Assembly: GCF_000002075.1 (NCBI RefSeq)
Contig: NW_004797297.1
Location: forward strand, 1,661,323-1,725,322
DNA: 64,000 nucleotides
Origin: Aplysia californica
Lineage: Eukaryota
Direction: 5' to 3'
Positions 34,201 to 47,361 of the stretch are shown here, piece after piece (within the stretch, counting starts at the first letter, position 1; the number at the start of each line of letters is the position of its first letter). The notes under the pieces were generated by a model that saw only the letters and a list, made by a program, of their open reading frames with translations, had not been told where the DNA came from and did not search any database. A program made the position numbers and the translations under genes.

Positions 34201-37200
34201 AATTTACTTCAGGTAATGTGGGTAACACTTACTGTTATATTTGTTTAATCACTAATTTTATGTTCTGGTTGAATTCTTTATTGTTGTGCACTTCGGGGCT
34301 TTTAGAATAATGAACTAATGCAAATTATTGTTAGTAATGAACTATTGTTATGTTGAAATCTGTGCACATCAAAGTTGAAATTGTTTTTGAAAAATCTTTT
34401 CCTTTTCCATCCAGGAGGGCACCATTTTCCAGAATGCTGTTTTCAATGAGACGATCCAAGTTATTGAACCGGATGAGGGATTGGATGGGGAAACGTGAGT
34501 GTTTAATTCAATACCGTTTTAGTGTAAAGTATTGCTGTTTTCCCACTTGATGTGACCTACAAATCCTGGCATGATCGCTACAAACTCTGAAACAGGGCAT
34601 GGGCTCATCCCATTTGTCTCTCCATTCCTTTTAATGTGTATTTTATGTGATGATGGACAATGGTCTTAAACACTGAATAAAAACAACTGCATTATTCAGG
34701 GGGCGGTGGCATATCGACGAAAAAATAAACCAATTCCGAGTTACAACTGAAGTGGGGGGGGGGGGGGATATTTTTGTTAGCGCAGAAAGACTTGAGGCTT
34801 TGCAGCTGTATGGTATAGTACTGTGTAATTTATTGATTTCATTTTTATTTTGCAGGTAGATAAATGGTTGGTTGCATTTTCATAATGCCAACCAACAACT
34901 CTTACTTGCAACATTAATATTGGATGCTAGTTTGACCCGTGTTTGTATGCTGTACAAATACAGGATAAATGTCATCCCACATACAATTTATGTAGTGTTT
35001 TTATAGCATTTAAAATTTAAATAAGTACAGTTGAACCTATTAAGTTGGAAGTTTGGACCCTGTGATGGTGGAATTTTCCCCTTCACGCCTTGATAAATTC
35101 CTAACAAATCTAAGACGGAAACCTTTTCTACCCGCAAATGGGCAAAGAAATTCTTTCCCTTCTGGGGGTTTTGACCTGTCGCAGGCAACAATACTTTGTC
35201 CGCTCAGCCCTGATTCAAAAGAAAAGTCCCAACTAAGATTAATTCAGCTGGCTCTCTATGACATGGCTGCCTGGAAAGGAACAGGGGAAGAGATGCGGAC
35301 TGTGAGTAGCTGTTGTTCCACCCATATGAGCCCTGAGCGATGCAGGTGGTCATGGTAGTTTAGATGTGAAAACTGACTGCTGCTTGTCTTCAAGGTGCGC
35401 TGGCACTGAAACTTTCCCGATAGCCAGAGGTATGAAATTTGACCTTTGTTTGCCACCCTGAGCATATGGCCAATGGCCAGCCTAGGACAAAGTTCTTTGA
35501 AGTATTGTTACTTGTACACACTAGTCATGGCTTTCTACCTTTTTTATTAGAGCTCGTTATATATGATTAAAAGACTTGTGGCTTTTGTTATAATTGATTT
35601 TATCGGGGAGTTATAGCGCAGCAAACAGAGGAGGGGTGGCATTAGTGGAATGTGTTTTATTACATCCGTGATTGGGGCAAAACATGGGAGCAAAGGATAT
35701 ATTAACACCAGGTCTGGAAAAAGTCTGGAATTTTGAGATAGGTCAGGAAAAAGTCGGGAATTTTGTGATGGGTCGGTAAGTCGGGAAAGGATAGGGCCTG
35801 CGTAATGTGTAGCTATCTAGACTGTATGGCTGATGAATCCTGAAGAGGAAACATAATTGAACCGCTATGGCGGAAGTGTATGTGTGACACCGAGGCTCGA
35901 TCAGGAAGAATCAAGATCTGCTTTCGTTACCACCCAGAAATTTTCCGGTAATAGTCTGATAGATAACGCAAAATTTGTAACATGCAGGTTGTGCATTACG
36001 AACGCTTTGTCGCCTTGAAAATAAATCAATATTAAAAGTTTGTCCTCTGCTGTCACTTGTGGAAAAAAAAAAGAAAAGAAAGTTATACAAGCGTTTTGTC
36101 AGGTTCGCCCTTGTGACTGGTCAATGAACCTGTGAGTACCGGCGGTCTGAGCGCTGTGAAGTATAGGACTCCGGAATTGGNNNNNNNNNNNNNNNNNNNN
36201 NNNNNNNNNNNNNNNNNNNNNNNNNNNNNNNNNNNNNNNNNNNNNNNNNNNNNNNNNNNNNNNNNNNNNNNNNNNNNNNNTTGAAGACTACGTTAGAGGT
36301 CAAAAACTGAACTTTGAAGCAAATTTTTAGTATATTTAGAATTTTGATAACTACTATAAGAGCTCTCGGCAAAGCACGCGTTGGTGCAGGCCTTGTGTGG
36401 AATCGGGATCCGTCATGCCTTGTTATTGAACTAAAGTGTTCGCGTTTCATTGGATGGGGTGACTGTATTTATATCTACATCTATATTTTAGCTTTCTGTT
36501 CAAGATTGGCAGAATTTCAGTGTCACTGCATCTTGCCCTCCCTCAGTTCTTACACCTCTCACACTGAATAGATCTACTTGAGCCATTCAAGTTATTACTA
36601 TTACTCTACTTTGAGTTTGAGCAATAGTTTTCGTCTTCACGTTTATTATATGAATCATGACACCCAGACTGGTTATTGACAGTCGATATTCTGGTTCTAG
36701 GTATTTTCTCAGGCTCAAAGCAGGATTCCTTTTTTATATAGGGCCTATAGTTTATGTAGGCTAATATGATGAGGGGGAAATATAAATACATGTAAGTAAG
36801 AACAGACTGAAATGCCAAAGTCACTCAAGATCCCAGTGCCACACTGACATGTCGACTGGATATAATGTACCTACATGTTTGTGTGTATATGTGTTCACGA
36901 ACATATACATATATATTATATCTGATATAAATGGAGCATGCGCTGCCATTATGTAACACGCCCCTGGAAAATGGAGGGCGCGTCCCGTCCCCCCCCGGGA
37001 AATTTGAGAAGCTGGGTAGCAGTCACCCAGTATTTTAATCATCTGTTGTTTGAATGAAGACTACTACAAAATGTACATTTGCATTCATTTTAAGACATTT
37101 TGACTTTTTATCATTGATGATGGCCTTTTTGGGGGATCATTCTTGATGCGCAGCAGCCTGATTTTTCTCTCAAATTGGGGTCTTGAAAAAATTTCCAAGA

Positions 37201-40200
37201 TTTGGTGGGGACCCTGTATTAAGTCCTTTGCTTTTAATCAGTTAAAAAGTGGTCCTTTGGACCCTCCCCTTAAAAATTCCCCTGTGCAAGACATAATTTT
37301 TTTCTGTCTCCCTTGTGATTCTTTTTTTTTAGACAGGTTCACTCATGATACTGCTGGACATGACATATTTATGTCTTAACTTTTTTGTTTCAGATTTTTC
37401 CTGTACGTGTTCCTGGCTGCCATTATCATTTTACTTCTTGTTGGCGCTCAGCAGTTGGTTGCTAGCTTTGGTGTAAGTATTCCTGTCCTATTTCAGCATT
37501 CAAGAGTTTATGGGTGATGTTCTGTAGGTTTTTCAACTTGTGGAGAGCTTTGCTTGTGCAGTATTATTATGTAGGGTCTAATCTTACTTTTTCATGCTCA
37601 AAATGTATATCTGTATCAAAGTATAGTCTTTGGGTTATCACAATTCCTCAGAATGTGGCTTACTGTTGACTTATTGAATAACACAGGTTATATAGATTTT
37701 ATGCCACTGTTTCATGAGGGACCTTGTCTCATTCTCTTGTACTATCCCAGGATATATCTGTTTGACATATGTCAGAAATGGGTTGGGTTTTTTTCTTGTA
37801 ATCAGCATGGTTATAAGAAATGCAAGGAAACAGCGGGTGATGCATTGCTGTATGCTACTACCCTCCTGAGGGCTTGCTAGAGAAACTTTGGAGTGCTAGA
37901 GCATGACTTGGACTATGTTTCAAGTTGTGTGTAGAACACTCTGTACATACACCGAGAAAAGAGATAGCCGATGCTTGTATATTACAGACCTGCCAACCAC
38001 TCCATGGCCAAAAATAATTTTTCTCTAAAAATCGGGGAGATGCTCTAGAACTCGAGAAGATTGATATTGTGTTACTAACCTGTTGTGGCAAATGTGTGTG
38101 TGCCGGGAAAGGTACCGGTTAATGCATTTACCCAAACTGTAGTACACGGCAATAAAAGATCAATTTTTACCAAATTTGAGTTCCATTAAAAAGGGGGCTC
38201 TAGCTTTATTGGAGTTCTTGGTAGGTTTGACATACTGTATTCAGCTCACTATTGAAAACAACAACACTGTTTTACATTCTGTATTTGTTTTCATTTTCAA
38301 GTGCTGTGACAATGTTGCCATGTTCATTTGTGTAAGATTATAATACAAATGCTGTGAGTCGGGATAAACAGTCCACACACTATTGCGCCGTGAAGGGTTT
38401 TGGGGGTTTTTTTTAGTTAGAAAGTATGCCTTGTATTCTACATTTCAAGACTGGCTTTGACTTATCATTCCCATTTGCTGTAATCTTCTGACACCTTGAA
38501 CTGTTTTTTAAGTTGTGCATGCAACATAATTTAGAGCTATTCAACTAATAAGCCAGAAGCATTTAAACAGGGAGTTTGTCACCTGTGAATGGTTTTCATT
38601 AGAGTGCAGTCCAGATATTTTTACCTGTTCCGGTGGCATCTTGACTTCTTTTTGACATTCAAAGTAACAATTCAGAGCCTTTTAGACACTTTCATCTTTG
38701 AATAGTTACTCTCTTTGGGCAAAAAGCCCTCATCCAAACCGCAGAGTAATTGAAATGGGGCTTTGATTTGTTTCTTGTTTTGTTTTGATTGTGGGTGTTT
38801 TTGTTGTTTTTGCCCTCCCCCAACTGAGATTTTCCTTTACGAAAGAGGGATGCTGAATGACATCTATTTCATCTTGCAAGGAAACAGCGGGTGATGCATT
38901 GCTGTATGCTTCTACCCTCCTGAGGGCTTGCTAGAGAAACTTCGGAGTGCTAGAGCATGACTTGGACTATGTTTCAAGTTGTGTGTAGAACACTCTGTAC
39001 ATGGAGAGGAAAAAAGGGTTACTCATAGGGGGCGGGGAGGGGTCTGTCCACTTTTATTAAGCCGGGGTAGAGCGGTTTCAAAATTTTACAACTAGCATTA
39101 AGGTTTTGCATGGAACATTCAACCTTTTTTTAAAATAAAAAGTGCAGTCGAACCTGTCCAAAATTAACACACACACACACACACCCCTTTTTTATTTTTT
39201 ATTTTATTTGGGGGGGGGGGGGTGAAAAAAGTCTGAGACAATTGTCCTTATATTTCTGAAAGAAACGCTAGTGGGAGGGGGACTATCCTGTGAGCTTTCA
39301 TATATAAAAGACTTCGTTTTCAAATAACATTAGATGTACCACCATCTGAAGCGTCTGTGGTGTGGCGTGTTTTTATGGTTGCTTTTTAAATTGTTAATGG
39401 CGGTTTGTTTGTTGTTTGATTGGTTGTTTTTTTTATGTTCAAATAAGACCTGCCTTTGATTTAAAATGTGGGAACTATTATTCGTTACCCATGCAAGGAA
39501 ACAGCGGGTGATGCATTGCTGTATGTTTCTACCCTCCTGAGGGCTTGCTAGAGCATGACTTGGACTATGTTTCAAGTTGTGTGTAGAACACTTTGTACAT
39601 GGATAGAGAAAAAAAATTTTACTCTTTGGGGACAGGGAGGGGTCTTTCCACTTGTAATAAACCAGGGTGGAGTGGTTTCAAAATTTTGCAGTTAACATTA
39701 AGGTTTGGCATGAAAAATGCAATCTCTTTTGAAATAACAAAGTACAGTCGAACCTGTCCAAGATTACCGCCCATGTTGATGAAAAAAATGGTCTGCTTAG
39801 ACGACAGTGTCCTTATATTTCTAAGAGAAATGTTAGGGGGAAGTGGACAATCTTGTGATGTTTCATATAAAAGACTTCGTTTTCACATAACATTGGATGT
39901 ACCTCCATCATGAAGTGTCTATAGCATGTTTTAATTGTCGTTTTTGTTAATGATGGCTTGTATGTTGGGTTTTTTAATGTTCAAATAAGACTTACCTTTG
40001 ATTAAAAGTGTGGGAACTATTGTCCATTAGCCATGCAAGGAAACAGCGGGTGATGCATTGCTGTATGCTTCTACCCTCCTGAGGGCTTGCTAAAGAAACT
40101 TCGGAGTGCTAGAGCATGACTTGGACTATGTTTCAAGTTGTGTGTAGAACACTCTGTACATGGAGAGAGTAAAAAACAAACAGTTTACCCTTTGGGGGCG

Positions 40201-43200
40201 GGGAGGGGTCTGTCCACTTTTAATAAGCCAGGGTAGAATTGTTTCAAAATTTTTCAGCTAGCATTTGACACTTTGCGGTCATCTTGTGATATTTCATATA
40301 AAAGACTTCATTTTCACATAACATTGGTTGTACCACCATCATGAAGTCTATGGCATTTTGTAATAGTAGTTTTTGTTATTGGATGTTTGTATGTTGTTTG
40401 TTTGTGTAGGTACCACAAACTGAAATTTCAAAGTCCTCTGATTTCATAGTTAACTACACTACCTTATAGAATTTATCATTCTGAGCATTTTGATACCAAA
40501 TTTATACATATAGCTTCATTTTTAACAAAGTTATGAACATCTGAAGTGGCAGAAAAATGTTAGTTTTTTAATTGCGAAATGTCTACACTTTGAGATGTCA
40601 CAACATTCTTAAATTTGAACGGACATTCACAAAAACTTGTAGACACACACCTATGAACATAGAAAACAAGCTCAATTTTTTTCAGGGCTATCAAATAACC
40701 AGAAGATGGAAATTTATAGACGTAAACATGGCTTTTTGACCAAAACGGCAAGAAATACAAGGGGAGATTAAAATCCCCACTCACGACCGCCGGCTTATCG
40801 GCTGCGCGCTGAAGGGAAGAAGAGAGACTTTATACGAAAAGGGGCGATGGTGCCCTGCTTGCAAGCCGACGGGGAGCGTCCGGTGTTTATTTGCGTATAA
40901 TGGCTGTGTTATTCTTGAAGAGGAATGAATGGGCTTTCTGCCGGTATATTTTCGTAGTCAGTCCGATCACTGGTTCCATAAAAAAAACAACACCGAAAGT
41001 TTTCACACGCAAATCTCTTCTATTAATTCTCAAAGAACAGTCTTTAGAAATATATCACCGGAAAGAGCGTCTTCTTATCTTGAAATATCGACGAATCAGA
41101 TTGCAGTATTTAATACCATACGCTCCCCGTTCCTGTTCAACCGAGGTCACTCGAAAAATCAATAGACGAAACGCGCTGCCGCGACAGTGAAAACCTCGAT
41201 AGTGTTGTCTTTTTTCCCGCAAGATTTTGCTTTCAAAAGAATCGTTGATCAAATAAATATTACCACTAAAAAGTGGAAAAGCTCCTCTTTCTTCTGATAT
41301 ATCAAGTGTCTGTGTGTATGCATGATCACACAGTGTTTTAGGAGGGTAAAAATGTGGGTTTTGGTCTCTGTGACAGTGCGCCACGGGGGCGCACGGCCAG
41401 TTTGCGGTACCTAGTTTGTGTTGTTTTTTTGTTTATGTTCAAATTAAGACCTGCCTTTGATTAAAAATGTGGGAACTATTATTCGTTAGCCATGCAAGGA
41501 AACAGCGGGTGATGCATTGCTGTATGCTTCTACCCTCCTGAGGGCTTGCAAAAGAAACTTTGGAGTGCTAGAGCATGACTTGGACTATGTTTCAAGTTGT
41601 GTGTAGAACACTCTGTACATGGAGAGAGAGGGGGGAAAAGTTTACTCTTTGAGGGCGGGGAGGGGTCTGTCCGCTTTTAATAAGCCAGGGTAGAGTGGTT
41701 TCAAAATTTTAGTTAGCATTAAGGTTTTGCATGGAACATTCAATCTCTTTTTAAATAACAAAGTACAGTCCAACCTGTCGAAGATTACCGCCCATGTTGA
41801 AAAAAATCTGCTTGGACAACAGTGTCCTTATATTTCTAAAAGAAGCGCTAGTTGGAGGGGGACTATCATGTGAGCTTTCATATAAAAGACTTCGTTTTTA
41901 CTAAACATTGGATGTACCACCATCATGAATCGTCAGTGGCACGTTTTAATTGTAGTTTTTGTTATTGGTGGTTTGTATGTTGTTGTTGTTTTGTTTTTTG
42001 TTAATGTTCAAATAAGACCTGCCTTTGATTAAAAGTGTGGGAACCATTGAATTCGTTATCCATGCAAGGAAACAGCGGGTGATGCATTGCTGTATGCTCT
42101 ACCCTCCTGAGGGCTTGCAAAAGAAACTTCGGAGTGCTAGAGCATGACTTGGACTATGTTTCAAGTTGTGTGTAGAACACTCTGTACATATGCAGAGAAA
42201 AGAGAGATAGCTGATGCTTGTTTAATTCAGCTTACCCCATGATCCCTTTGTCATATCAATTCTGTCTTTATTTAACAGCGAAAACGTCTTTCGAAGCCCC
42301 GCCAGCCGGTTGAAATGGGAACACAAAATTCTGATGTGGACTATGACTGGTTGCCAAAGGAGACTCTTCAGGGTCTTAGTAAGTTTTTTTGAATTATTAT
42401 ACTTCAGTCGTTTAGTTTATGTGGGTTTTGGTTGGGGGGGGGGGGGGGTTGAAATATGGCGCTGTGTAGTACAGTGGAATCCTGTTTTAACGAGAGGGTG
42501 GGAACTGGTACGAAATGTCCGTTATAGCAGGTTTCTCTTTATGAGGGATCCAGTAAGAATTTAAAAGGAAATAATAAAGTATGAGTTTGGTGTTCTGTTG
42601 CTGTTTTTTATTATCTCCCCTGATGATGGTTTTGTTCAACATGAAATCTAGGTCTTTCTTGATCAAAAATTGAATCAGGTTTCTTTCTCTAGCGTTAAAA
42701 CGATGTTGACAGCTCGGCTTTGGTGATCAGAAAGAAAGTTCTCAAGGCTGACTTGCCCGCTGTATTTTCTCCCACCCCACCACACCCTGTGGTGCGTTCC
42801 CGCATCTGCTTGCGCACATCACACATTCGCTCCATCCATCACAGCACTGTGACCTCTCCATCCCCGCATCAGAGAAGTGAGAGGCATGATAGGCCTAGAT
42901 AATCTAGACTAGGCTGGCCTATCACAATGCGTTCTGCTTCTCTACTACAGCTCTTCTGCGCATGCAACACCCTCCCCACTCATTCGCTCCGGCTTTCATC
43001 GTTGGCACACATGGGCTCTCCCATTCTTTATTTTGCTTGATCACCAAGTGTCTCAGCTGGCGAGATTTTACATATGTAGAAATGACCTATACGCTGTGCA
43101 TGGCAACAGGAATATTCCGCTATAACCGACTCGCGCGTTTATCTGATTGAGCTATAGCAGTATTTTATTTACAAAGATGAAGAAGGGGGGGAAAATAGAC

Positions 43201-44886
43201 TTCTCGTTATTTCAGAACTCGTTATAAGTGGACTCCACTGTACCAACGTGTACTGGGCCTGGTTGAAAACACATGTATTTTTTAGAAAGGAATATTGATC
43301 GAACCAGACTATTTCAATGGGTTGATTTACATTTTTTCACTAACTTTGTTTTCCTTAACTCACTTCAGGCGGTTCACACAACAGTTGCGTTACCCCCGCC
43401 GCGACGCTCGCGACGGGTCTCACAAGCCCTGCGTGACCAACTTTGGAATTTTTTTTCCGCTCTACAAATCACGCACGGATCGCGAGACCCGCCTCGTACC
43501 CTTGTTTGGCCAAGCCTGAACTACTTAGACTTCGTTTCATATCTCTGGGGCCGGTAGTTTTTAAGTTATTGAAGGTGAAGGACAGTGACCCCCAACTGGG
43601 GTTGAACAGACCGGAACTCGCGCTTTGTTTTTTCTATGCAGCTGATAGTAATCCGACAATCGCGTTGTAGTAACGGTCGAAGACGTCGCATGAACAAGAA
43701 TCACATAATTTCACCGTTTTCTATACTTCTGTACGTTTTACTAGTTCTAGTATCTCAGAATAGGATGTGTCTAATAGTTAGGATCCTGGATATGTACCCG
43801 AACACGGCCCGAGTCGTAGTTCTAGGGCTAGATCTAGCACTAGTACCAGTGTTGTTTTTCGCGCAACGAGATCACAACGTCGTGCTGTACATCTGTCTCA
43901 TGTAATTCAGTGTATGGGTCTGAATCAATGCACAGACCAACTTTTATATTTTCGCCAAACACTCGCACATGGATACAAATCAAACCAGAACACTTTGAAC
44001 TTTTATTTTTGTTGTTGTAGTGAATTTCATTCTACTTGTCACGTCTGGAAATTTTTCGGAAAATCAAATTCATGCCAATTTTTTAAAAATCATAGAAATT
44101 AAAGTATTAGACTTAGACAATTATAGTTTTTTTGTATTAGATTAAGCTTGAATGTTACTTTACTGTGTCAAAAAATAATTACAATAGGGTAATTCTGAGA
44201 GTTGTGGTGATTTATTGAAATACCCCCAAAAACGCCAGTCTTCAACGCTTGTGACTGGTGAAAGGGCCCAGTCGCAAGTGAAAGAGTATGGAATGTAGAG
44301 AGTTGGGTGATTCGGTTCTGTTGCTACTGTTTTGTTTTTGTTTTTATTCTCAAGATGCATCTCATATGTTGCAAAGGAGGTTCAAGATTAGTAAAAACAT
44401 GTTTTAGTTTATTAACCAGAGCTTCCAGTCTTCCGCAAATGGAAAAATTTTGTGAACATTCGTGTTAAAAAAAATATATAAAATTATTTTTTAAAATGCG
44501 AAATAAAAAATTTCCGTAATTACTGATAGTCAACAAAATAGCCAACCCATATCGGAAGTGCTCTTTTATTTGCAAGTGTAGACGGTTCTTTTACGGGGTC
44601 TTTTACTTTCACTTTCTTAACTTTCTAAAGCACAAACAGCACCAGCACTGTAAACAAGAGGAAGACATAACGATTGTGGTTCAATAGATATTTGGGCCTG
44701 CCACGAAAAGAAAACTCTGAAGAGAGCTTGATTTTTTCATCAGACTTGTTTATTTGTACATATTGTTGTGGATTTAAGTTGAATATAAACTGTCAAGCTG
44801 TTTAGATCTAGATTCTAGCTGTTATACTATTACTGTTAGATATAAATCTATAATAAGGATTCTACACATTAGATCTAGAATCTAGA

Positions 44887-44923
<37 letters not shown>

Positions 44924-45954
44924 ATATAATATGGTGCAAACCAACACATGCAGAAAAAAGGTTGAACATTAACTGTCAAGTTTTATAGATCTAGCTGTTA
45001 CACTAACTGTTGTGGATGTACAGTATCAGTACAAGGGAGAAAGCATGGCTTTGAATTTATATGGATTAACACTACAGAAAATTGTGTATGCAAGGTATGT
45101 TTTTTCTTCTCTTATTTTCTTGTAAAATTTAGGCTTGAATAGCCAAAAATGACACTCTGTGGGCGTCCCCCTTCTACCCCCTGCCAGGGCGCTGCCCTGC
45201 ACCCGAAAACCTCGAACAATGATATCAGCTGCTGGAAGCTCTGATTAACTGTAAACAAAGACATTAATTGCTGTTCGTCTATTATTTTTTTCTCTTTTCC
45301 TCAAGAGATTAGCATTTTAGCATTAAGTTTGGAAACTGTTGTTTGTTTTGCCATGCAAGGAAACAGCGGGTGATGCATTGCTGTATGCTTCTACCCTCCT
45401 GAGGGCTTGCAAGAGAAACTTTGGAGTGCTAGAGCATGACTTGGACTATGTTTCAAGTTGTGTGTAGAACACTCTGTACATGAGATTGTAGGAGAAAAGC
45501 CATTGATCGTTTTATGAAATGTTTGAAAGATAACAATTTTTTACTGAGAAAGAATAGTGGACATAAAAGAGTTGACGAGGGTCTGCAATTATGTGTGCCC
45601 TTCAAGCCAGTTATTCTGTGAATTCACAAATGATGTACTTGGTAATGTTGCACTCAAAATACTTTTTTTGATAGCGCTGATATATCAGGCTCTTATGTGA
45701 GTAGTGGTCTGGGTTTTTGTTGGGACTGTATTGTGTGCATTGATCAGCTGTGGATGAACTTGGCTGTTGATGTAGATTTTTTTTTTCTTCACCAACAGTC
45801 GGTTTCCTTGAGCGATCAAATTTGACATTTCAAGACGTCTTTGAATATATCTGTTTCTTTTGTTTTCCCCACAGACAAGTCTCCCCGCAGATCACCGAAG
45901 CAATCACCAAGACAAAGGCGTAACCTCCGATCGACAGGGTCTGGAGAGGATTGA
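28144..45954 (+). CDS. SSR1: Translocon-associated protein subunit alpha (TRAP-alpha / signal sequence receptor 1), 9 coding exons, 300 aa
   Basis: Manually spliced exons 28144-28219, 29830-29957, 32137-32236, 32780-32907, 34033-34164, 34415-34494, 37394-37472, 42279-42378, 45875-45954; all introns GT-AG, phases consistent, total 903 nt. Product has signal peptide ([17 protein letters not shown]), acidic N-terminus, [80 protein letters not shown] (TM), [17 protein letters not shown] and basic tail SPR..R.TGS, all characteristic of TRAP-alpha. Confidence 0.97.
28612..29256. mobile_element. MITE with ~85-bp terminal inverted repeats (SSR1 intron 1)
   Basis: CAGACCCGGTAGGGGAACTCTTTTGTGATTTCGGA at ~28655-28689 mirrored at ~29181-29215, extending to both ends. 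Confidence 0.75.
29830..29957 (+). CDS. SSR1: SSR1 exon 2 (acidic region)
   Basis: tttctcag acceptor; [42 protein letters not shown]; donor AAG|GTACT (in-frame alternative donor 12 nt upstream possible). Confidence 0.88.
32137..32236 (+). CDS. SSR1: SSR1 exon 3
   Basis: [33 protein letters not shown]; acceptor ttttacaag, donor GTAAG. Confidence 0.92.
32780..32907 (+). CDS. SSR1: SSR1 exon 4
   Basis: [43 protein letters not shown]; canonical splice sites. Confidence 0.96.
34033..34164 (+). CDS. SSR1: SSR1 exon 5
   Basis: [44 protein letters not shown]; canonical splice sites. Confidence 0.96.
34415..34494 (+). CDS. SSR1: SSR1 exon 6
   Basis: [27 protein letters not shown]; donor GTGAGT. 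Confidence 0.95.
37394..37472 (+). CDS. SSR1: SSR1 exon 7 (transmembrane helix)
   Basis: [26 protein letters not shown]; donor GTAAGT. Confidence 0.95.
37821..37950 (+). ncRNA. Box H/ACA snoRNA copy 1 (SSR1 intron 7)
   Basis: Hairpin GCAAG..CTTGC, H box AGAGAA (37879-37884), hairpin GGAGTG..CACTCT, ACA (37945-37947)+3 nt; both pockets complementary to conserved LSU rRNA sites at 14-15 nt from the boxes. Confidence 0.88.
38875..39004 (+). ncRNA. Box H/ACA snoRNA copy 2 (SSR1 intron 7)
   Basis: Near-identical to copy 1; intact H (AGAGAA) and ACA boxes and pockets. Confidence 0.88.
39492..39602 (+). ncRNA. Box H/ACA snoRNA copy 3, 19-nt internal deletion (variant or pseudogene)
   Basis: Same sequence but lacks GAAACTTYGGAGTGCTAGA between two TGCTAGAG direct repeats; the 3' hairpin loses its lower stem. 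Confidence 0.7.
40034..40163 (+). ncRNA. Box H/ACA snoRNA copy 4 (SSR1 intron 7)
   Basis: Intact; H box AAAGAA. Confidence 0.88.
40408..41412. mobile_element. Unclassified TIR DNA transposon inserted in snoRNA array between copies 4 and 5
   Basis: Termini AGGTACCACAAACTG / CAGTTTGCGGTACCT; flanking GTTTGTGT duplicated; spacer sequence resumes on both sides. Confidence 0.75.
41493..41622 (+). ncRNA. Box H/ACA snoRNA copy 5 (SSR1 intron 7)
   Basis: Intact; H box AAAGAA. Confidence 0.88.
42063..42191 (+). ncRNA. Box H/ACA snoRNA copy 6 (SSR1 intron 7, 87 nt before exon 8)
   Basis: Intact boxes and pockets; 1-nt deletion in upper part of 5' hairpin. Confidence 0.88.
42279..42378 (+). CDS. SSR1: SSR1 exon 8
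   Basis: [33 protein letters not shown]; donor GTAAGT. Confidence 0.94.
42472..43240. mobile_element. Tc1/mariner-type MITE (SSR1 intron 8); partial second copy at ~57510-57900
   Basis: TA-CAGTGGAATCC ... GGACTCCACTG-TA; internal 42866-43230 homologous to 57512-57900. Confidence 0.75.
44417..45243. mobile_element. hAT-like non-autonomous element with 6-bp target duplication
   Basis: 12-bp TIR CAGAGCTTCCAG / CTGGAAGCTCTG; ATTAAC on both sides. Confidence 0.65.
45354..45483 (+). ncRNA. Box H/ACA snoRNA copy 7 (SSR1 intron 8)
   Basis: Intact; H box AGAGAA, ACA at 45478-45480; flanks unrelated to the intron-7 tandem unit. Confidence 0.88.
45875..45954 (+). CDS. SSR1: SSR1 exon 9 (last coding exon)
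   Basis: [26 protein letters not shown]-stop (TGA 45952-45954); pyrimidine-rich acceptor ccccacag. Confidence 0.92.
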
Positions 45955-46596
45955 ATGAATGTTGTTGTGCTCTAGTTTATTATAAATATTTGCCTCTTGT
46001 CTTTTCTGTCAGAGTCATCACTATTTATCATCGAGTCTATACTTTGTATAGCAACACAAATTTTTCTTTAAAATGCAAATGCAGGATTAATGCATGTTTA
46101 TAAGAGAAGTATTTGTTTTCTCATTTGGTCTCAAACATTGTCCTAGTGAGTGAGGTTGCTGGTCATTGGCAACTTTATACTGAAAATTGTAAGATATTTC
46201 TATATTCTACTGTCCTTTATACGTGTTGCTGCGATTTCTTTATCAATGAGGTGTTTTAATGTTTGTTACTTTTAGTGTTTTCTTTCAGAGCTGGGTGTTG
46301 GGCTGTGTCTGTGGCATCTGTGTGAGGCTGTGTGTGGATGGTTGAGCATAGACAGGGTTTTTGAAAGTGTACGGCTTGAGATATTATTGCATTGTCATTT
46401 CGTAGCATTTATTTTGGTTTTTCAGCAGAAACATGGCATTGCTCAGCAAAATTGGAGATGAGTTCTTGTATGCAAAGCACAATTTGTTGAGGAAGCATAC
46501 TCGTGTATAATGTTCATTCCAGTTTGTTATGAGTGATTGGTTGATTGTGTGATAACATCGAACTTGCACTTTTTGTTTTCATTGAAGAATGAAAGG

Positions 46597-46602
46597 AATA
46601 AA
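46597..46602 (+). terminator. Probable SSR1 polyadenylation signal AATAAA
   Basis: AATAAA ~640 nt after the stop, followed by T-rich downstream sequence. Confidence 0.55.
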
Positions 46603-46720
46603 ATTTGTGGATATATGTTTAGATCAGTCTTTTTATCTTTTTTCTGAGTGCTTAGGCTACCTGCCCGTGTTTTCAAATTTTGTCCAAGTATTTGTTCCCT
46701 TATGTGTATTTTTCATTTAA

Positions 46721-47361
46721 CTCATTACACCCTAAGGGCCTGGATGGGAAATCCATTCCTAAATCCTAAGCAAGGGGAAAGAACCCACCTCCCGTGAATA
46801 CAAGCGTTTAAAAAACATGTTTTAAAAATGATAAATTCCAAAAACTGGAAAAAAAATTAAAAGAAAAATTAATGTGGTTTCAGAAAATATACCCGATATG
46901 CGCAAACTGTTGTTCAATCGGGGTGTTTGACCTGTCACCCTCACTCTCAACCTCGTGGCCGGGCCCTAGATCTAAATTCTAGATTTTCTTTGCATGATCA
47001 ATCTGAATCGCCCCAAACTCTTGCTACGTTTTCATCAAAATCTGAGTCATCTGATTTGTCATATATATATATGCTTGTTTTTGCTGAAATCCAGCGTTAT
47101 TTCCTTTTTCGAACTCAATTGTGTCGCTTTTCAACAAGTAGAGACCCCTTCAAAGTGTCGGTTACGCGATCGCACTTCGGTCGGCTCTAATACTAAAACT
47201 GCTGGCCTGAAAAATTTCGTTTCGGTGTCTGGCGAAAGAAGGTACTTTTTGCAATAACTGCAAATCAAAATCTCGGCCCCGGAGTTTCACTAAGGCGAGA
47301 CTTATTTTCTAAAGACCCTAGGTCGGTGAGTGCGGTCCCGGGCGAGTTAGGGTGTAATGTG
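46721..47361. mobile_element. piggyBac-like MITE between SSR1 and TRAPPC2L 3' ends
   Basis: TTAA-CTCATTACACCCTAA ... TTAGGGTGTAATGTG-TTTA. Confidence 0.55.

Follow-up and report, generated by a model that had tools for sequence, protein, structure and literature searches.

Introns that carry several box H/ACA small nucleolar RNA (snoRNA) genes have been described for Drosophila and rice (J Mol Biol 341:669, 2004; RNA 11:1303, 2005; as summarised in PMC5932544 and PMC2780460), and the multi-snoRNA intron is listed as a standard arrangement in a recent review (PMC12205218). The box H/ACA family SNORA9 (Rfam RF00411) is listed for the sites U1683 and U1782 of 28S ribosomal RNA (rRNA) (PMC12288042), and in human, SNORA9 resides in SNHG15, a non-coding gene (PMC6480895). 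The locus described here lies in a stretch of 64,000 nucleotides (nt) of the Aplysia californica genome (NCBI RefSeq assembly GCF_000002075.1, contig NW_004797297.1, positions 1,661,323 to 1,725,322 of the forward strand), in the following called the window. In this window, introns 7 and 8 of SSR1, the gene for the translocon protein TRAP-alpha, hold seven copies of a unit of approximately 130 nt. The reading that best explains this arrangement, with a probability of roughly 0.78, is an intronic cluster of a SNORA9-family box H/ACA snoRNA with the mechanism and history proposed below.

Like SNORA9, the Aplysia unit is an H/ACA-type RNA of about 130 nt that matches the family model over its full length, and its 5' pocket strands are predicted to pair with the same 28S site. 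Unlike SNORA9, its 3' pocket strands, and those of other heterobranchs, differ and fit the 28S position U2678, and its scores of 35-51 bits compare with a gathering score of 85 bits. In contrast to human SNORA9, the Aplysia RNA is hosted by a gene that encodes a translocon protein, and it is present in seven copies instead of one. With the Drosophila clusters, as far as the summaries describe them, the array shares several isoforms of one H/ACA snoRNA in a single intron, the sense orientation, and an origin by local duplication; it differs from them in phylum and host, and in that the pairing of host and snoRNA is kept over three phyla while the copies change intron. As in rice and other plant clusters (PMC2780460, PMC5122169), more than one snoRNA lies on one precursor and cuts between the units are needed, but the Aplysia array is homogeneous whereas those of plants are usually mixtures of different snoRNAs of the C/D and H/ACA types. 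Mammalian snoRNA-ended long non-coding RNAs (sno-lncRNAs) also involve more than one snoRNA per intron, inseparable by exonuclease trimming alone; in contrast to these, the Aplysia spacers are not conserved. What is modestly new is the deep conservation of SSR1 as host, the relocation of the snoRNA from intron to intron, and the altered second pocket; the cluster layout itself is already known.

The predicted snoRNA array in Aplysia SSR1

A direct-repeat search over window positions 36000-47000 yielded a single family of seven copies with a unit of about 131 nt, all on the plus strand and sense to SSR1. In the alignment of the seven copies, about 130 nt form an invariant core; the flanks are unrelated or partly related. 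Intron 7 contains six copies and intron 8 a single one; six are intact and one is broken. They are listed here with their scores for the Rfam SNORA9 model and for R1, a covariance model of the 5' hairpin and H box.

37820 to 37950, plus strand: predicted H/ACA snoRNA copy 1, intact (Rfam SNORA9 48 bits, E 1.8e-7; R1 93.7 bits; fold)
38874 to 39004, plus strand: predicted H/ACA snoRNA copy 2, intact (Rfam SNORA9 50.8 bits, E 3.6e-8; fold z-score -2.7)
39491 to 39602, plus strand: copy 3, defective (alignment; Rfam 35.4 bits; fold without 3' basal stem)
40033 to 40163, plus strand: predicted H/ACA snoRNA copy 4, intact (Rfam, fold, R1)
41492 to 41622, plus strand: predicted H/ACA snoRNA copy 5, intact (Rfam, fold, R1)
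42062 to 42191, plus strand: predicted H/ACA snoRNA copy 6, intact, with the 3' splice site of intron 7 located 87 nt past its end (Rfam, fold, R1)
45353 to 45483, plus strand: predicted H/ACA snoRNA copy 7, intact, about 390 nt before exon 9 (Rfam, fold, R1)

These copies had first been noticed in a sequence-only reading of the window, and repeat search, alignment, and exon map confirm its seven sense copies and their division between the two introns, with starts within 1 nt of those given there. The same reading had ascribed the architecture hairpin-H box-hairpin-ACA-NNN to every copy, which is borne out by folds and boxes for six of them but not for copy 3. This copy has two substitutions and a 19-nt deletion between two short direct repeats; the deletion takes away the hinge as well as the 5' strand needed for the basal stem of its 3' hairpin. 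Copy 3 is best read as a pseudogene from its sequence.

In E-value mode, Rfam matches all seven copies to RF00411 at model positions 1-133 with 35.4-50.8 bits (E 3.6e-8 to 2.6e-4). A family scan had been proposed as a check in the earlier reading, and its outcome is divided: the copies are SNORA9-like by E-value and stay below the gathering score. The six intact copies fold into two hairpins with an H box in the hinge and an ACA followed by 3 nt, with fold z-scores from -2.0 to -3.7. The H box is AGAGAA or AAAGAA at unit positions 59-64. For H/ACA RNAs, the top of the pocket was expected 14-16 nt before the respective box (H or ACA), and the distances found have this canonical spacing, namely 15 nt from the 5' pocket to the H box and 14 nt from the 3' pocket to ACA. 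With the predicted 3' end, both hairpins and boxes are present in these six copies and incomplete in copy 3. Further support comes from covariation among 16 copies from five heterobranch species, in which 97.7% of the cells are paired and 15 of 33 pairs have both partners changed. In 500 shuffles no value as high was reached, and slid partners pair in only 30-49% of cells. The strands of the pockets are invariant among the heterobranch copies. By sequence and predicted structure, the SSR1 units are a SNORA9-like box H/ACA snoRNA family, adding to the Aplysia gene set an unannotated and probably functional rRNA-modification guide that is missed by the Rfam threshold.

The family is confined to this locus. 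Searched by BLAST against all 927,310,431 bases (4332 contigs) of the assembly, the unit gave exactly seven matches, all on the plus strand at SSR1, and a genome scan with the Rfam SNORA9 model gave matches at the SSR1 locus only. This agrees with the local amplification put forward by the sequence-only reading, as a genome-wide scatter was looked for in this search and was absent. A short interspersed element or snoRNA-derived retroposon is excluded by the same result, with seven same-strand copies at one locus and nothing dispersed. As the flanks differ strongly among the copies, an assembly duplication does not account for them.

The host gene was assigned by its protein. A profile search of the genome with Pfam TRAP_alpha (PF03896) matched a single SSR1 exon, and the exon map was therefore taken from proteins found via this exon: a search with it led to full-length TRAP-alpha proteins, and a later search to the protein named by NCBI as TRAP-alpha of Aplysia californica (P0211), which was used for tblastn with the exons searched singly and by reference. 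P0211 is approximately 100% identical to the window exons, which identifies the gene as SSR1 of Aplysia californica; it has nine coding exons. The borders of exons 7-9 are standard GT-AG.

37394 to 37472, plus strand: SSR1 coding exon 7, amino acids 216-241 with the transmembrane segment (tblastn with P0211, 100% identity; donor GTAAGT directly following)
37473 to 42278, plus strand: SSR1 intron 7, 4806 nt, GTAAGT...CAG, holding copies 1-6 (exon map, splice borders)
42279 to 42378, plus strand: SSR1 coding exon 8, amino acids 242-275 (tblastn with P0211)
42379 to 45874, plus strand: SSR1 intron 8, the last intron, holding copy 7 (exon map)
45875 to 45954, plus strand: SSR1 coding exon 9 including the stop codon (P0211; tblastn match 45875-45951)
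40420 to 41400 (approximate), no strand assigned: dispersed repeat of about 1 kb, transposable-element-like, between copies 4 and 5 (genome copies)

Introns 7 and 8 contain no runs of N. A 100-N assembly gap (window positions 36181-36280) interrupts intron 6 and lies some 1.1 kb before exon 7.

Copies 2-6 sit within a longer repeat of 540-620 nt, and the array probably arose by local tandem duplication of such a segment. The units in intron 7 are separated by spacers of 410-1330 nt. The dispersed repeat of about 1 kb, which is probably a non-autonomous transposable element, has at least 40 genome copies with 88-96% identity on both strands, and its insertion explains the 1459-nt spacing of copies 4 and 5. 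Among the six intact copies the cores are 95-98% identical, compared with 17-83% for the flanks (100 nt upstream and 150 nt downstream). The few differences in the cores concern an apical loop, an N position of the H box, a C-G versus a U-G pair, and the 3' tail; unit positions 38-39, 59, 61, and 70, along with the tail, are diagnostic for telling copies apart. Near-identical cores within diverged flanks indicate, at the level of the aligned sequences, selection or gene conversion on the RNA itself; following the duplications, one or the other would have held the cores nearly identical while the spacers decayed.

SSR1-hosted relatives in other species

For the search of relatives, SSR1 loci were fetched by protein look-up and scanned with R1 and Rfam. 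Inspection of the SSR1 introns of related species, as the earlier reading had recommended, revealed sense-strand homologues in nine further species, so that the association is not restricted to Aplysia.

Elysia chlorotica: 4 copies, one in intron 5 and three in intron 7, sense
Elysia marginata: 3 copies in intron 8, sense
Lymnaea stagnalis: 1 copy in intron 7, sense
Biomphalaria pfeifferi: 2 copies in intron 7, sense
Caenogastropod contig (ENA ERZ26859067): 7 copies in intron 5, sense
Haliotis asinina: 2-3 copies in intron 5, sense
Liolophura sinensis (chiton): 1 copy in intron 5, sense
Lingula anatina (brachiopod): 1 copy in intron 5, sense
Owenia fusiformis (annelid): 5 copies in introns 4, 5, and 7, three of these in intron 7, sense

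The Rfam SNORA9 scores reach up to 57 bits in Owenia; the chiton and Lingula have scores of about 40 bits. Contig ERZ26859067 is assigned to a caenogastropod because its SSR1 is closest to those of Nucella (76%) and Babylonia. Its array (L010:13071-15109) consists of 6.6 tandem units of 306 nt in SSR1 intron 5, which are 97% identical. Each unit opens with an H/ACA RNA that shares a homologous 5' hairpin with the Aplysia unit but has a different 3' hairpin. In the SSR1 locus of Lottia, no homologue was found by Rfam, BLAST, or covariance model; in Babylonia there is a weak, degenerate-looking match (E 0.057), which is doubtful.

At least two copies within one intron are found in six of the nine other species. 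The sequence-only reading had named multi-snoRNA introns of plants and Drosophila and had used the vertebrate rule of one snoRNA per intron as its yardstick. This yardstick is inappropriate for a mollusc, and no rule is overturned, because the rule is a vertebrate feature; with the known clusters of Drosophila and rice and the six other lophotrochozoans, the layout cannot be called exceptional. Intronic H/ACA clusters of the kind known from flies and rice occur, by these predictions, also in molluscs and annelids. That SSR1 is not a known snoRNA host agrees with the literature searched, in which no paper naming it as such was found, but the association itself appears to be old and conserved. 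Likewise, no relevant paper was found in a search for literature on mollusc snoRNAs and pseudouridylation. The earlier reading is right on the identity of the locus and overstates its unusualness.

In a tree of the heterobranch copies, the copies cluster by species, even across different introns, which fits recent lineage-specific amplification or concerted evolution as judged from these sequences. Within one genus, the copies occupy introns 5 and 7 in E. chlorotica versus intron 8 in E. marginata, and this predicted placement shows fast positional turnover. Taken together, the comparison of loci suggests that SSR1 is an old, conserved host of the SNORA9 family and that several copies per intron are common and not Aplysia-specific. 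Hosting by SSR1 would be ancestral in Lophotrochozoa, with copy number and intron position turning over by lineage. Two copies in Owenia (L024:8631-8758 and L024:11285-11416) and one in Haliotis (L021:11199-11326) have AUA or no recognisable ACA or H box; these probably represent duplicates in decay or variants of the ANA type.

Predicted rRNA targets

Targets were searched in the rRNA unit of Aplysia itself (28S; L015:3461-7204) with a permissive pocket scan and shuffled-rRNA controls. The 5' pocket is predicted to pair with 9+4 base pairs (bp) around U1183 of Aplysia 28S rRNA. Its guide strands match the Rfam SNORA9 consensus, whose pocket strands address U1183 as well; the equivalence of U1183 to human U1683 is taken from PMC12288042 and the sequence context, not from an alignment with the human rRNA. 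The caenogastropod unit also reaches U1183, with a split of 3+8 bp.

The 3' pocket is predicted to pair with 5+7 bp around U2678 in helix 71 of Aplysia 28S rRNA. U1260, the context of the second SNORA9 site (U1782 in human), is not among the top matches of the Aplysia 3' pocket, whereas the 3' pockets of the copies from Lingula, the chiton, and Owenia fit Aplysia U1260 best and keep the second pocket of SNORA9. The second pocket thus differs in heterobranchs. In Haliotis asinina, a paralogue at L021:8833-8960 has 3' pocket strands of the heterobranch type and a divergent 5' hairpin, and it lies in the same intron as two classic SNORA9-like copies; this pocket type would accordingly predate the heterobranchs.

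As a candidate target of the 3' pocket, the human site psi-m3818, which is served by SNORA48 and SNORD17, was considered. It was mapped onto Aplysia via five neighbouring documented human 2'-O-methyl sites (PMC5597630). The site maps to U2680, while the best register of the pocket is U2678, and the candidate was rejected.

Proposed release from the intron and alternative explanations

In the proposed route, the units would be transcribed within the SSR1 pre-mRNA, and dyskerin/Cbf5, Nop10, Nhp2, and Naf1, then Gar1, would assemble on every unit during transcription. After splicing and debranching, the spacers would be removed, most likely by endonucleolytic cuts between the units followed by exonuclease trimming to the protected small nucleolar ribonucleoproteins (snoRNPs). 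The resulting RNAs of about 130 nt would guide pseudouridylation of 28S U1183, the SNORA9 site, via the 5' pocket and probably of U2678 via the 3' pocket. Cuts between the units would be needed because exonucleases entering at either end of the intron would be halted by the outer snoRNPs. The special release route and the link of rRNA modification dosage to SSR1 transcription, both put forward in the earlier reading, are plausible on these grounds as proposals. Internal splicing, which had been named among the possible release routes, lacks support in the sequence of intron 7: this intron contains neither AG/GTRAG nor a polypyrimidine-AG/GT motif, and a single internal GTRAGT, fewer than obtained by shuffling. 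Lacking such motifs and any surplus of donor-like sites, the intron gives no basis for recursive or internal splicing, which was rejected on this sequence evidence, and endonucleolytic separation is left as the most likely process.

Sno-lncRNAs arise where one intron carries two snoRNAs, and an outcome of this type is the main alternative to endonucleolytic separation. The intron would then not be fully resolved, since exonucleases stop at the outermost snoRNPs, and snoRNA-capped long RNAs would result, perhaps together with some mature snoRNA. Six units in one intron with spacers of 410-1330 nt, in addition to the absence of recursive-splice motifs and of a donor-like excess, are compatible with this, and snoRNA-ended intronic lncRNAs are mentioned in a review (PMC12205218). 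The spacers are, however, poorly conserved among the copies and one of them bears a transposon insertion, which makes a functional spacer RNA unlikely, and the clusters of Drosophila and rice are reported to yield individual snoRNAs. Altogether, incomplete resolution of the intron is unlikely compared with separation by cuts between the units.

The expression within the host transcript that the proposed route presupposes would be dispensable if the copies used their own intronic promoters, independently of SSR1. Some nematode and plant snoRNA genes have their own promoters, and a stretch of about 70 nt upstream, which is common to copies 3-6, might conceivably contain a promoter element. Upstream of copies 1, 2, and 7, however, the flanks are unrelated to those of copies 3-6 (30-50% identity), all copies in the ten species are sense to SSR1, as host-dependent expression predicts, and the last copy of each array is located within about 90-390 nt of a 3' splice site. 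Own promoters are therefore considered very improbable. Least probable of all is an assembly artefact, or a set of non-functional copies, whether decaying duplicates or products of retroposition, among which one gene at most still works: the assembly in 4332 pieces, the nearby N gap (36181-36280), the degenerate copy 3, and the AUA-bearing or boxless Owenia and Haliotis copies could be taken in its favour, but each copy has distinct flanks, none lies outside the locus, and six cores remain 95-98% identical amid near-random flanks with substitutions that avoid paired and guide positions.

Several results weigh against a functional SNORA9-family cluster released by cuts between its units. In gathering mode, Rfam gave no match in the whole window, and the gathering score of RF00411 is reached by none of the seven copies. 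Matches of equal quality occur in shuffled rRNA in about 1 of 100 cases for the 5' pocket and about 3 of 100 for the 3' pocket and are thus only moderately rare; at such rates of about 1-3%, the target calls rest mainly on conservation and not on the score alone. U2678 was not found as a documented pseudouridine in the literature examined, and it lies 2 nt upstream of U2680, the psi-m3818 equivalent. The spacers yielded no recognisable endonuclease signal. Finally, concerted evolution alone could hold the cores identical without use of every copy.

Combined with the comparison across species, the cluster reading leads to a broader proposal. According to it, SSR1 would have hosted the SNORA9 family before the split of molluscs, brachiopods, and annelids, and the snoRNA would repeatedly move among introns 4, 5, 7, and 8, amplify to tandem arrays, and become homogenised in each species, while the second pocket of heterobranchs would have been re-aimed at 28S helix 71. 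Multi-snoRNA introns would then be normal in lophotrochozoans, implying a splicing-independent, endonucleolytic release pathway that is undescribed in animals outside flies. As a joint statement this is tentative, with the odds slightly against all of its parts holding at once. One host gene and one snoRNA family in ten species offer a clean system for studying duplication, change of intron, homogeneity, and retargeting, and the SSR1 arrays are a system for asking how several snoRNAs leave one animal intron.

A G-rich element with 71-82% conservation is present within approximately 20-40 nt past copies 2-5 (39004-39099, 39604-39699, 40170-40265, and 41627-41722), which may reflect shared descent of the spacers or a processing signal.

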